Sequence record: OP953026.1
Direction: 5' to 3' (one strand)
Length of the DNA stretch: 64,000 nt
Shown: one piece after another, positions 6,473 through 34,426 of the stretch
How the letters are laid out: every line of letters starts with the position of its first letter
How positions within the stretch are numbered: position 1 is the first letter of the stretch
Translations under genes and position numbers: made by a program
Notes under the pieces: model-generated
Seen by the model: the letters and a program-made list of their open reading frames with translations, nothing else
What the model was told of the DNA's origin: nothing
Database searches by the model: none

Positions 6473-8716
6473 ATGAGCGTACATGCCCTAAGAGAACTGT
6501 TTAAACACAAAGGCGAAAAGAATTACGAAGTCTTCTCAATGGAAGATTTCATTGGCCGCCTAGAAAGTGAAATTGGTCTAAATGACAGCGTTGTTAGTCA
6601 AGGTCGTTCCCTTATTAGCAGCATTTCACATGAAAACTTCGGTACCGTGCAAGCTACCGACATTCAAGATGCCGCTGCAATTTATAACAAAATGCAAATG
6701 CTCGTTAACGACTATGGTTTCGAACGAGTAAGTTCCAGTGATCCTCAAGTACGTGCTCGTGAAGAACGTGTCCGTGAGAACCAAATCACTGCTGCTACCA
6801 TGGCTGCTATCGCCTGTGCTGATGAAACTAAATATATCCGTGCACTACGTGGTATTACCAAAGCTAAAGCTTCTAATGAAGATCATGTTAAGGTTGTACA
6901 GCATCAGTTCAATGGCCCTGCTGGTGGCATTCAAGTATTCGAAAATGGTGTTGGCCTAGAGAACTATAACGAGAAGTCACAGCGTGATTTCCGTGTTGTA
7001 ACTATTGGTTATAACCTAGCTGCTAGCCGTCAGGATGAATTCGCTGAGCGTATCTATCCGACCACCGTTATCAACCCGATTGAAGGTGGTGTTGTTCAGG
7101 TTCTTCCTTACATCGCTGTAATGAAAGACGTTTACCACGAAGTATCCGGCGTTAAGATGGATAACGAAGAAGTGAACATGGTAGAAGCCTATCGTGATCC
7201 TTCCATCCTCGACGACGAAAGCATTGCACTAATTCCTGCCCTAGATCCGGCTGGTTCCAATGCTGACTTCTTCGTAGACCCGGCTCTTGTTCCTCCGTAC
7301 ACCATCAAGAACGAGCAGAACCTAACTATCACTACTGCTCCGCTAAAAGCGAACGTACGTCTTGATCTAATGGGTAACTCCAATGCTAACCTACTCATTC
7401 AGCGTGGCATGCTTGAAGTTTCTGACACCATTGATCCGGCTGGTCGTCTAAAGAACCTATTCGTTCTACTCGGCGGTAAAGTTGTTAAGTTCAAGGTTGA
7501 CCGTCTACCTCGCGCTGTGTTCCAGCCCGATCTAGTTGGTGATACCCGGAACGCAGTTATCCGTTTCGATAGCGATGACCTTGTTGTTAGTGGCGATACC
7601 ACTTTCATCGACGGTTCAGCTGATGGCGTTATTAACGACCTTAAGACTGCTAAACTAAGCCTACGTCTAAGCGTTGGTTTTGGTGGTACTATCAGCCTAT
7701 CCAAAGGCGATTCTAAGTTTGGTGCTACCGACACTTACGTCGATAAAGTTCTAAACGAAGATGGCCAGGTAATGGATAATGCTGACCCGGCTGTTAAAGC
7801 TATTCTAGATCAGCTAACTGACCTAGCTGTTATCGGTTTCGAACTAGATACTCGCTTCACCAACACTAACCGTCGTCAGCGTGGTCACCTACTACAGACC
7901 CGTGCACTACAGTTCCGTCATCCGATCCCGATGCACGCTCCTGTAACTCTACCGATGGACACCATGACCGATGAAGGTCCGGGTGAGGTTGTTAAAGCTC
8001 TAACTGTTAACACCAACATCCGTAACAGCAACAACGCTGTTAAGCGCATGCTTAACTACCTTGCTCAACTACGTGAAGTTGTACACAATGGTTACAACCG
8101 TCCGAAGTTTGGTATCATCGAAGGTGCACTATCCGCTGTAATGCGTCCGACCTATCGTTACAAAGAACTAGATCTTGAGAAAGTCATCGACACCATCAAG
8201 TCTAAAGATCGTTGGGACGACGTTTGCGCTGCGATCCTAAACTGTGTTAAAGCTGAGCTATTCCCGGCTCACCGTGATTCCAACATTGAAGCTGCCTTCC
8301 GTGTTATCTCCGGTAACCAGGATGAAACTCCGATGTATCTCTTCTGCTCCGACAAAGAGATTGCTAACTATCTAATGACTAAAGGTGACGACCGTACTCT
8401 AGGTGCTTATCTCAAGTACGATATCGTTTCCACCAACAACCAGCTATTTGATGGTAAGCTAGTTGTAATTCCGACCCGCGCAGTACAACAAGAAAACGAC
8501 ATCCTCTCCTGGGGCCAGTTCTTCTACGTATCTACTGTTATCGCTGACCTACCGATCACTCGTGGTGGTCACCAGGTTACTCGCGAAATCGCGGCCATTC
8601 CGTTCAACCTACACGTCAACAACATTCCGTTCGCGCTAGAGTTCAAGATCACTGGCTTCCAGAAAGTCATGGGCGAAACTCAGTTCAACGGTAAGCTTGC
8701 TGATCTTAAGCCGTGA
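6473..8716 (+). CDS. gp120: major capsid protein (phiKZ gp120)
   Basis: 747 aa; GLE at residues 161-163 fits the known prohead-protease cleavage; highly-expressed codon usage; TGA stop. Confidence 0.95.
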   Translation: MSVHALRELFKHKGEKNYEVFSMEDFIGRLESEIGLNDSVVSQGRSLISSISHENFGTVQATDIQDAAAIYNKMQMLVNDYGFERVSSSDPQVRAREERVRENQITAATMAAIACADETKYIRALRGITKAKASNEDHVKVVQHQFNGPAGGIQVFENGVGLENYNEKSQRDFRVVTIGYNLAASRQDEFAERIYPTTVINPIEGGVVQVLPYIAVMKDVYHEVSGVKMDNEEVNMVEAYRDPSILDDESIALIPALDPAGSNADFFVDPALVPPYTIKNEQNLTITTAPLKANVRLDLMGNSNANLLIQRGMLEVSDTIDPAGRLKNLFVLLGGKVVKFKVDRLPRAVFQPDLVGDTRNAVIRFDSDDLVVSGDTTFIDGSADGVINDLKTAKLSLRLSVGFGGTISLSKGDSKFGATDTYVDKVLNEDGQVMDNADPAVKAILDQLTDLAVIGFELDTRFTNTNRRQRGHLLQTRALQFRHPIPMHAPVTLPMDTMTDEGPGEVVKALTVNTNIRNSNNAVKRMLNYLAQLREVVHNGYNRPKFGIIEGALSAVMRPTYRYKELDLEKVIDTIKSKDRWDDVCAAILNCVKAELFPAHRDSNIEAAFRVISGNQDETPMYLFCSDKEIANYLMTKGDDRTLGAYLKYDIVSTNNQLFDGKLVVIPTRAVQQENDILSWGQFFYVSTVIADLPITRGGHQVTREIAAIPFNLHVNNIPFALEFKITGFQKVMGETQFNGKLADLKP

Positions 8717-8797
8717 GCTGGAAAGGGTTACCGTTATCTAGAAAATGGGACTATCCGTTATTTGGAAGACGGTAATGCCCGGAAGTTAGAAGAGTAA
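8717..8797 (+). other. in-frame 26-codon extension after the capsid TGA (candidate readthrough product)
   Basis: GCT GGA AAG GGT TAC CGT TAT CTA GAA ... GAA GAG TAA = AGKGYRYLENGTIRYLEDGNARKLEE; no start codon before the motif; terminator 9 nt after the TAA. Confidence 0.75.
8732..8761 (+). repeat. 30-nt exact repeat, copy 1 (copy 2 at 34385-34414)
   Basis: CGTTATCTAGAAAATGGGACTATCCGTTAT. Confidence 0.95.
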
Positions 8798-8806
8798 CAG
8801 ACATAG

Positions 8807-8826
8807 GCCCTCCCTTCGGGGAGGGC
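8807..8826 (+). terminator. capsid operon terminator hairpin
   Basis: GCCCTCCC-TTCG-GGGAGGGC flanked by CATA and TATG. Confidence 0.85.
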
Positions 8827-8835
8827 TTTATGTTG

Positions 8836-8871
8836 TATTACATTAAAAAAAGTTTAAGATCTATATTACAG
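8836..8871 (+). promoter_or_regulatory. early (vRNAP) promoter
   Basis: A7-GTTTAAGATC-TATATTAC; phiKZ early consensus TATATTAC; 35/36 nt identical to 60544-60579. Confidence 0.85.
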
Positions 8872-8912
8872 TAATGATCATGATCTTCTAATTTAAAAAT
8901 AGGTTAATTCAA

Positions 8913-9365
8913 ATGAACGTTCAATTATTTCCAGAAGTCATCGAAAGATGGCAAGATGCCCTAAGGGTATCTCTTATAGAAAAAAATACCATGGTAGATA
9001 ATAAGATGTCTACCGTAGATGATGATAAATACATTAATACTTTCTTTGAAGAATTCCATCCTGTTCAGGATGCCTTTATGCCCAAAGGGCTAGAGGACTT
9101 TATTACTGATTATGCCAAGAAAAACATTGAGGAGATCCTTCAAGAAAAACAGTTTAAGCGGGCCACCGAAAAGTTATATTGTTCGAGTGACCCGCATAAA
9201 TGGCAGAAATCAAGTAATAAGGAAAAGAGTGAATCCTTTAAGGGAAGGTCCGTACATCAAACTAAAAAGAGGCTCCCCAACATTGTAGATTTGGAGGCCG
9301 TTGTGATTAAGGTAGATTTCAATGGTAACACTAAAAATTGCGGGGCTTACTCAAGTATCAGTTAA
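8913..9365 (+). CDS. hypothetical early protein (gp121-like position)
   Basis: 150 aa downstream of the early promoter; AGGT SD. Confidence 0.8.
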   Translation: MNVQLFPEVIERWQDALRVSLIEKNTMVDNKMSTVDDDKYINTFFEEFHPVQDAFMPKGLEDFITDYAKKNIEEILQEKQFKRATEKLYCSSDPHKWQKSSNKEKSESFKGRSVHQTKKRLPNIVDLEAVVIKVDFNGNTKNCGAYSSIS

Positions 9366-33892: not shown

Positions 33893-34426
33893 ATGCAGGA
33901 TATCTTTCCGTATGACATGGCATCGAGGGACGCGCTAGTAAAACTTGCGCGGGATGATTTAAAAATAAACTTCAAACCAGAAACAGTTACATTTGAAGAT
34001 ATGTTTTTTAGTCCAACCACGATTGAGCCTGGACGTACATTTATTGAAATGATCGACATTACTACTGACATTAAGTACATGTTAACTTACCGTCGGTTAG
34101 ATTTTGCTGATCCACGAGCTATTGGTGAAGGATCTATCCTTAAGATAGTTGGTACTTTAACACCTAAAGCAATTGCTGAAGAAATCAACCGTTCACGGGG
34201 TTGGAAGCTTGGACCAGATGATGTTTCATTTGATACAACACCAATCAATGCAACTACGGATGTTGTTCCATACACGATAGTAGCTATGTCGAGTAGTTAT
34301 GCTTACTATGGTGAATGTAATATACTAATTCAACGTATTGATGATACATCGGATACTATCCGGCTATTAGAGAATGGCGCAGCACGTTATCTAGAAAATG
34401 GGACTATCCGTTATCTAGAAAGTTAA
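33893..34426 (+). CDS. virion structural protein (gp143-like) ending in a 3x RxLE[N]G tag
   Basis: GAGG SD; gp126/127-type body; C-terminus RLLENGAARYLENGTIRYLES. Confidence 0.88.
   Translation: MQDIFPYDMASRDALVKLARDDLKINFKPETVTFEDMFFSPTTIEPGRTFIEMIDITTDIKYMLTYRRLDFADPRAIGEGSILKIVGTLTPKAIAEEINRSRGWKLGPDDVSFDTTPINATTDVVPYTIVAMSSSYAYYGECNILIQRIDDTSDTIRLLENGAARYLENGTIRYLES
34385..34414 (+). repeat. 30-nt exact repeat, copy 2 (copy 1 at 8732-8761)
   Basis: CGTTATCTAGAAAATGGGACTATCCGTTAT, same peptide frame (RYLENGTIRY). Confidence 0.95.

Follow-up and report, generated by a model that had tools for sequence, protein, structure and literature searches.

The stretch of DNA analyzed here (sequence record OP953026.1; 64,000 nucleotides, hereafter the window) comes from Pseudomonas phage phiKZ. 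It is 100% identical to NC_004629, with window positions equal to genome positions minus 111,795, and the phiKZ features described below all lie on the + strand. The gene gp120, encoding the major capsid protein (MCP), occupies positions 6473..8716 and comprises 747 codons ending with TGA (100% identity to PHIKZ120 of NC_004629; Pfam PhiKZ_MCP, E = 5e-228). This TGA (8714..8716, next base G) is a candidate leaky stop codon, given its co-occurrence with a downstream tag in relatives. It is followed by a 26-codon in-frame extension (8717..8794) closed by a second stop codon, TAA, at 8795-8797. The encoded peptide contains a repeat of 8 residues, x-x-R-x-L-E-(D/N)-G, in three copies. At the RNA level, it contains an 8-nt purine-rich spacer, GCTGGAAA (8717..8724), and a long hairpin (8725-8780). 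Farther downstream, the capsid transcript would end at an intrinsic terminator (8805..8838) made of a 10-bp GC-rich stem and a T-rich tail, an equivalent of which is kept in all relatives. Beyond the terminator, the motif CTTTATG(Y)(Y)GT is kept in the tag-bearing relatives examined (window 8826-8869), followed farther 3' by ATCTATATTAC or a closely similar sequence (8860-8869 in phiKZ). This second element resembles the phiKZ early-promoter consensus and may be an early promoter ahead of gp121.

To compare the 3' end of the capsid gene, MCP sequences were gathered from GenBank phages, IMG/VR and metagenomes; the metagenome scan for further relatives returned seven loci only, mostly duplicates. 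Results showed that the MCP gene ends with TGA and continues for 24-30 in-frame codons carrying the three-repeat motif in all 26 distinct tag-bearing relatives. These belong to at least seven genera of Pseudomonas chimalliviruses and include PhiPA3, PS119XW, Phabio, 201phi2-1, Psa21, RVTF4, Viktualia and Noxifer. Conversely, the 11 distinct relatives lacking the tag all end with TAA, including L037, which is nested within the tag-bearing clade. Frame 0 of the extension is open in 26/26 tag-bearing sequences, while stop codons are present in frames +1 and +2 of nearly all of them. The pN/pS ratio is about 0.5 in frame 0 and the residues of the motif survive synonymous changes. The in-frame ORF behind the phiKZ capsid stop codon is thus conserved and selected at the protein level. 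These data provide strong comparative support for the premise of the first-pass annotation, namely readthrough of the capsid UGA into a tag, and we infer that the extension is very probably produced in this way. Since TGA goes with the tag and TAA with its absence, the hairpin would lie inside a translated readthrough extension.

It could be argued that the extension is never translated and acts purely as an RNA element, its peptide pattern being accidental. We found no proteomic evidence for the tag, and the published model of the phiKZ capsid stops at residue 747 (PMC11297242), as this explanation would expect. It is nevertheless very improbable: the three-repeat motif also ends a genuine and widespread protein family (see below), only frame 0 is consistently open, the motif residues are retained through synonymous changes, and the choice of the stop codon tracks the presence of the tag. 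A full-text search of the literature on phiKZ-like phages found no report of MCP readthrough, the phiKZ structural papers examined do not mention a capsid protein extended by readthrough, and a PDB sequence search with the 26-residue tag or gp143 gave no match. Independent initiation of the extension was also considered, and no start codon was found 3' of the SD-like sequence GGAAAGGG in phiKZ.

Regarding the decoding of the UGA, a phage-encoded opal suppressor was sought in phiKZ 230-280 kb (ARAGORN) and in the window, and was rejected on this basis. Seven phiKZ tRNAs were found (Thr, two Asn, Asp, Met, Pro and Leu), none of which has a UCA anticodon, and no tRNA is present in the window; the genome annotation numbers only t01-t07. 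Decoding of UGA by the near-cognate tRNA-Trp of the host is the default assumption. Since phiKZ appears to encode no suppressor, tryptophan would be the most likely residue inserted.

Sequence variation within the phiKZ species is limited. Over positions 8705-8800, 36 of the 47 records are identical and the few SNPs are uninformative. One synonymous change, in isolate Brmt, disrupts a stem pair of the hairpin. In isolates NK1, fMGyn-Pae01 and W10-2 (L077, L078 and L079), a G-to-T change at the equivalent of window position 8792 converts the last codon of the extension, GAG, to TAG. The tag is thereby one residue shorter and terminates in ...LE, as in several other genera.

A similar triple-repeat tag is located at the C-terminus of gp143 (34355..34426), where it is part of an ordinary coding sequence ending with TAA. 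A 30-nt block of the capsid extension (8732-8761) is identical to positions 34385-34414 in the gp143 gene, and the same small hairpin forms there. As the first-pass annotation had noted, the outer arm is unique to the capsid copy: the gp143 copy shares the inner 30 nt and lacks this arm. In PhiPA3, the capsid and gp143 tags encode clearly different peptides, and the 30-nt identity therefore suggests that gene conversion took place recently in the lineage of phiKZ. The gp143 family corresponds to phrog_2935, annotated “virion structural protein”, and to DUF7941. The triple repeat is found at the extreme C-terminus of all 53 full-length homologues of this family, the one exception being a 99-residue fragment, and is therefore a genuine protein module. 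In the AlphaFold2 model of gp143 (33893-34426; pLDDT 89.5), the tag is predicted to form short beta-bridged turns, and the globular part resembles a chain from the outer peripheral region of the phiKZ baseplate (PDB 9xqd; Foldseek E = 6e-7; TM 0.58-0.67). The 201phi2-1 homologue of gp143 has been detected in virions according to the literature, and gp143 was absent from the phiKZ structural papers examined. gp143 was reported to be a holin-specific regulator of lysis (PMC12894885) and was found to be non-essential by TnSeq (bioRxiv 10.1101/2025.11.23.690004).

The structure following the capsid UGA was analyzed by minimum free energy (MFE) folding of positions 8714-8797. The predicted hairpin spans 8725-8780 and starts 8 nt after the TGA. 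Its outer stem pairs positions 8725-8735 with 8768-8774 and 8777-8780, leaving a 2-nt bulge (8775-8776) in the 3' arm (8768..8780), and consists of GGG/CCC, one U.G pair, a perfect block of 7 bp and another U.G pair. It is followed by a middle stem (8737-8742 with 8761-8766) and an apical stem (8744-8748 with 8755-8759) closed by the loop 8749-8754. Two A.A mismatches, at 8736/8767 and 8743/8760, separate these three stems. In total, the hairpin contains 22 pairs (23 when counting a G.U pair closing an ACUA loop), two A.A mismatches and one bulge. The 8-nt spacer and near-continuous hairpin described in the first-pass annotation therefore agree with the MFE fold in their pairs, mismatches and bulge. 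The energy of the hairpin is about -28 to -30 kcal/mol, with -29.6 for the fold of 8714-8800. Compared with dinucleotide shuffles of 8714-8800 (mean -16.6, sd 2.5), the natural sequence has a z-score of -5.13, and 0/200 shuffles were as stable. The hairpin is a real RNA structure within the in-frame extension, and its position, about 8 nt 3' of the stop codon, is that of the stable structures in known 3'-structure readthrough signals. It is followed by GGAAGTTAGAAG and by no T run, which distinguishes it from an intrinsic terminator.

A UGA with a hairpin close behind it, within a coding sequence, is also the layout of a bacterial SECIS element, in which case the hairpin would recruit SelB and selenocysteine would be inserted at the UGA. 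However, known SECIS elements have a GU-containing loop, which the phiKZ loop GACUAU lacks. The apical stem-loop, the part that SelB would read, is not conserved among relatives, and phiKZ does not show the conserved apical loop or bulge for SelB at a fixed distance that defines bacterial SECIS elements. An Rfam scan of positions 8500-9000 with permissive thresholds gave no SECIS match but only chance-level matches to unrelated families (≤26.5 bits versus gathering cut-offs of 40-137). The fact that the relatives infect several different Pseudomonas species also speaks against selenocysteine insertion, which we regard as extremely improbable.

We evaluated the conservation of the fold among the tag-bearing relatives. 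RNAalifold applied to 24 sequences left nothing beyond a 5-bp core (CCGU/ACGG), in which the first Arg codon pairs with the second Asp-Gly codons. One structure common to all relatives was rejected as a candidate: when the phiKZ hairpin was projected on the family, 71% of the cells were paired and the inner stems were poorly kept. In the phiKZ clade (11 sequences), the RNAalifold consensus structure corresponds to the outer stem, with GGG/CCC and a helix around CCG/CGG, its 5' arm being 8725..8735. This stem has 91.7% of its cells paired, versus 44-60% when the 3' partner was slid. It begins (GGG at nt 12-14) exactly 8 nt past the stop codon in 11/11 sequences. The readthrough-type geometry pointed out from the phiKZ sequence, an 8-nt spacer and then a stable helix, is thus exactly kept throughout this clade. 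Base-pairing probabilities identified the outer stem as the first strongly paired run in 8/11 sequences; phiKZ, L010 and Phabio also have weaker pairs nearer the stop codon. Compensatory changes were found at four pairs, with 12 cells changed on both sides versus 3.6 +/- 1.9 in shuffles. Two more robust measures of covariation are weak in this clade, where the sequences are related (63/500 and 21/500 shuffles reach the observed value). Covariation, one of the checks suggested in the first-pass annotation, thus gives a mixed picture: some compensatory changes are present in the outer stem of the phiKZ clade, the robust measures are weak, and no structure is shared across clades. By these comparisons, only phiKZ has the full-length hairpin described in the first-pass annotation, and its outer stem alone is common to the phiKZ clade. 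The middle and apical stems (8737..8766), which lie in or beside the 30-nt block identical to the gp143 coding sequence, are specific to the phiKZ species.

Other clades carry other structures. The Psa21 clade (11 sequences) has a different, near-invariant fold, in which a CCGG/CCGG helix starting 6 nt past the stop codon encloses CCGUC/GACGG and is followed by a second hairpin; no covariation was detected there. In the Noxifer clade and L025, pairing probabilities indicated stable helices 4 nt past the stop codon, and MFE folds of further Noxifer-clade relatives placed the start of the helix 3-5 nt past it.

Synonymous positions were examined in the same clades. Invariant third codon positions are concentrated in the stem in the phiKZ clade (4/9 in the stem vs 0/18 outside) and in the stems of the Psa21 clade (6/10 vs 3/17 elsewhere). 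In the phiKZ clade, third codon positions of the stem, including those of the 3' arm, are invariant even where the amino acid varies: in 11/11 sequences, Tyr, Phe, Leu or Ser is always encoded by NNC, Ala, Pro or Ser by NCC, Asp or Ser by GAC or AGC, and Lys by AAG (with one Glu, GAG, at that position). The spacer behaves similarly, with Gly encoded by GGA in 9/9 cases and Lys by AAG in 10/10 cases, although gp120 itself contains no GGA codon. Synonymous divergence is not lower in the extension than in the capsid gene (pS 0.56 vs 0.41, and 0.39 vs 0.35). Any constraint on the extension is therefore local.

Another possibility is that the hairpin belongs to the 3' end of the transcript. Together with the terminator, it could keep 3' exonucleases or RNase E from degrading the very abundant capsid mRNA, or it could aid termination, decoding being unaffected; as most ribosomes would stop at the UGA, the region would be mostly untranslated. 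The hairpin is indeed located 25 nt upstream of a canonical intrinsic terminator (8805-8828), and every tag-bearing relative has a stable structure. However, tag-less relatives have the terminator alone 3' of their TAA, with no additional hairpin. Moreover, relatives keep the spacing between stop codon and structure (8 nt in the phiKZ clade) but not the spacing between structure and terminator. A role restricted to the 3' end is thus distinctly unlikely.

The first-pass annotation had also proposed a comparison with synonymous shuffles, and its outcome depends on the codon usage chosen. When the codons of the extension were permuted with their exact composition kept, the phiKZ sequence was more stable than expected (z = -2.55, p = 0.007), and 22/24 relatives had negative z-scores (mean -1.37). 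Recoding with uniform codon usage gave z = -3.45 for phiKZ and negative values for 24/24 relatives (mean about -2.1). Recoding with the usage of neighbouring genes gave z = -3.33 for phiKZ and negative values for 19/19 testable relatives (mean about -2.1). In contrast, no excess stability was detected with gp120 usage (-28.3 vs -23.2 +/- 4.5, z = -1.1, p = 0.13), and the mean z-score of this null model across 19 relatives was -0.34. The predicted excess of stability was thus found against permutation (p = 0.007) and ordinary or uniform usage (z about -3.3) and not against gp120 usage (z = -1.1). Recodings with gp120 usage are as stable as the natural fold because the Arg codon CGU is complementary to the Asp-Gly codons GAC-GGU. 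We consider this null model too lenient, as the extension does not use gp120-type codons and is described worst by this usage: its codons match the usage of neighbouring genes better than that of the MCP gene in 19/19 relatives, and GGA, GGG, CGG, AAT, TTG and TTA, which are used in the extension (8717-8794), are absent or rare in gp120 (6473-8713). This abrupt switch of codon usage at the UGA fits a far lower rate of translation past the stop codon, selection for base-pairing, or both.

The gp143 tags serve as a control, since they carry the same motif in an ordinary coding context. In 26 distinct genes of the gp143 family, the final 84 nt show no fold beyond shuffles (mean z -0.38; -0.24 kcal/mol per nt), whereas the 24 MCP extensions subjected to the same test all have negative z-scores (mean -1.90; -0.32 kcal/mol per nt). 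The two sets differ by Mann-Whitney tests not corrected for relatedness (p = 3e-7 and 3e-5).

These results bear on the simplest alternative, in which the UGA would be leaky by its context alone and the hairpin would be a by-product, without influence on readthrough, of the coding of the R-x-L-E-D-G repeats and of a recent gene conversion with the gp143 tag. Coding for the repeats can create pairs, as the Arg codon CGU pairs with the Asp-Gly codons GAC-GG and CTAGA is palindromic. In line with this explanation, the gp120-usage recodings fold as stably as the natural sequence, the pairs common to all clades are those set by the conserved Arg and Asp-Gly codons, the 30-nt block is found unchanged in the gp143 coding sequence, where nothing is read through, and synonymous conservation shows no overall excess. 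Yet the gp143-family tags, with the same motif, are unfolded, and the codons assumed by the gp120-usage model are not those of the extension. The natural sequence also beats permutations of its own codons and ordinary-usage recodings in nearly all relatives, and invariant synonymous positions cluster in the stems and the spacer even where the encoded residue changes. A by-product of coding is therefore possible but doubtful; it keeps some weight because of the gp120-usage null model, the lack of a cross-clade structure and the weak covariation. Selection for a helix just past the leaky stop codon is favoured by the permutation and ordinary-usage null models, by the contrast with the gp143 tags and by the location of the invariant synonymous positions. 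We thus tentatively prefer a selected helix that modulates readthrough, with confidence just short of even.

Under this preferred reading, the capsid gene would end with a leaky UGA at which most ribosomes terminate. A minority of ribosomes would insert an amino acid, most likely Trp through the host near-cognate tRNA, and would thereby extend the capsid protein at its C-terminus by a 26-residue tag, built of three short beta-turn repeats. Established ribosome geometry places a helix that begins 8 nt past a stop codon at the mRNA entrance when the UGA occupies the A site, and the base of the phiKZ helix would be positioned there. Selection would maintain the spacer and the outer stem in the phiKZ clade, while the other clades would keep a different stable helix 4-6 nt past the UGA. 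The most likely task of the stem-loop would be to tune the frequency of UGA readthrough, and hence the ratio of tagged to untagged capsid protein. That the stem-loop stimulates readthrough is plausible and has partial support from the comparison of relatives. In bacteria, readthrough stimulated by a hairpin is not known outside SECIS elements.

Several known systems resemble parts of this arrangement. The pseudoknot of MuLV gag-pol and the UGA with an extended stem-loop of alphaviruses and coltiviruses also combine a leaky stop codon, a spacer of about 8 nt and a stable structure in the downstream coding sequence, and the product of these eukaryotic viral signals is, as predicted here from sequence comparisons, a minority protein with a C-terminal extension. 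However, the MuLV and alphavirus signals act on eukaryotic ribosomes and eRF1, whereas phiKZ would rely on a bacterial ribosome and RF2. In addition, the phiKZ structure is a plain hairpin with no pseudoknot and is not common to all tag-bearing clades. The coat/A1 system of phage Q-beta would be similar in that a phage capsid gene has a leaky UGA, decoded by a near-cognate tRNA to give a minor extended subunit. Its genomic signature, a capsid gene ending with UGA followed by an in-frame extension, is present in phiKZ, where a minor extended subunit is predicted. The extension of Q-beta, a small ssRNA phage, is roughly 200 residues long, whereas phiKZ is a 280-kb dsDNA jumbo phage with a 26-residue tag. 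Q-beta is not known to have a dedicated 3' hairpin, while phiKZ has a structure after the stop codon. In other dsDNA phages (T7 10A/10B, Listeria phage PSA, and Ig-like domains appended by frameshifting), recoding at the capsid gene 3' end likewise yields a sub-stoichiometric extended subunit. These extensions arise by frameshifting, unlike the in-frame readthrough proposed for phiKZ, which has no slippery site. The phiKZ locus is best described as a probable leaky-stop capsid extension of the Q-beta kind which, in a dsDNA jumbo phage, is combined with a 3' helix at the spacing of eukaryotic viral readthrough signals.

The position of the MCP C-terminus suggests where the tag could be exposed. 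In the 2024 capsid structure, the C-terminal arms (residues 728-747) form a six-helix bundle with a pore of ~9 Å at each hexamer centre, and at pentamers the arm contacts the external decoration protein gp244 (PMC11297242). As the MCP C-terminus lies at the centre of each capsomer, a readthrough tag would emerge there. The capsid of phiKZ, the model for nucleus-forming jumbo phages, is known at near-atomic resolution. All capsid models would miss a minority subunit carrying a tag at capsomer centres if the extension is made, and a tag present in sub-stoichiometric amounts would be averaged out in icosahedral maps. In that case, the same module would be found in the capsid and in the lysis regulator gp143. 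As the same tag ends both, a shared docking partner is possible, through which head assembly could be coupled to the timing of lysis or to a common site in the virion. If the hairpin tunes readthrough, a mechanism of eukaryotic viruses would be brought to bacterial translation. It would be, outside SECIS elements, the first structure-assisted readthrough signal in a dsDNA phage, and, as a compact natural sequence, would allow protein ratios to be set in Pseudomonas. In its most complete form, this proposal would make the UGA, the 8-nt spacer and the helix a structure-assisted readthrough signal acting on the bacterial ribosome and metering a sub-stoichiometric beta-repeat tag at the capsomer centres of nucleus-forming jumbo phages, with a docking partner that the capsid and gp143 may share; that all of these elements hold together is speculative and unlikely.

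Other open frames after the capsid stop codon were also observed. In Escherichia phage Goslar, a distant chimallivirus (L044, 1086-1175), the capsid TGA is followed by 28 open in-frame codons with no repeat motif, which could be due to chance. In the metagenomic sequence L027 (2128-2742; = L100), the capsid TGA is followed by an in-frame ORF of 203 codons encoding an Ig-like domain (Pfam Big_2, E = 4e-9), with an ATG at codon 3. In another metagenomic sequence, L113 (from position 890), a TAA is followed by at least 95 in-frame codons, Big_2-like by eye, with no ATG in the first 60 translated codons past the TAA. These Big_2 ORFs may reflect readthrough or another form of recoding into a decoration domain, or they may be separate genes.
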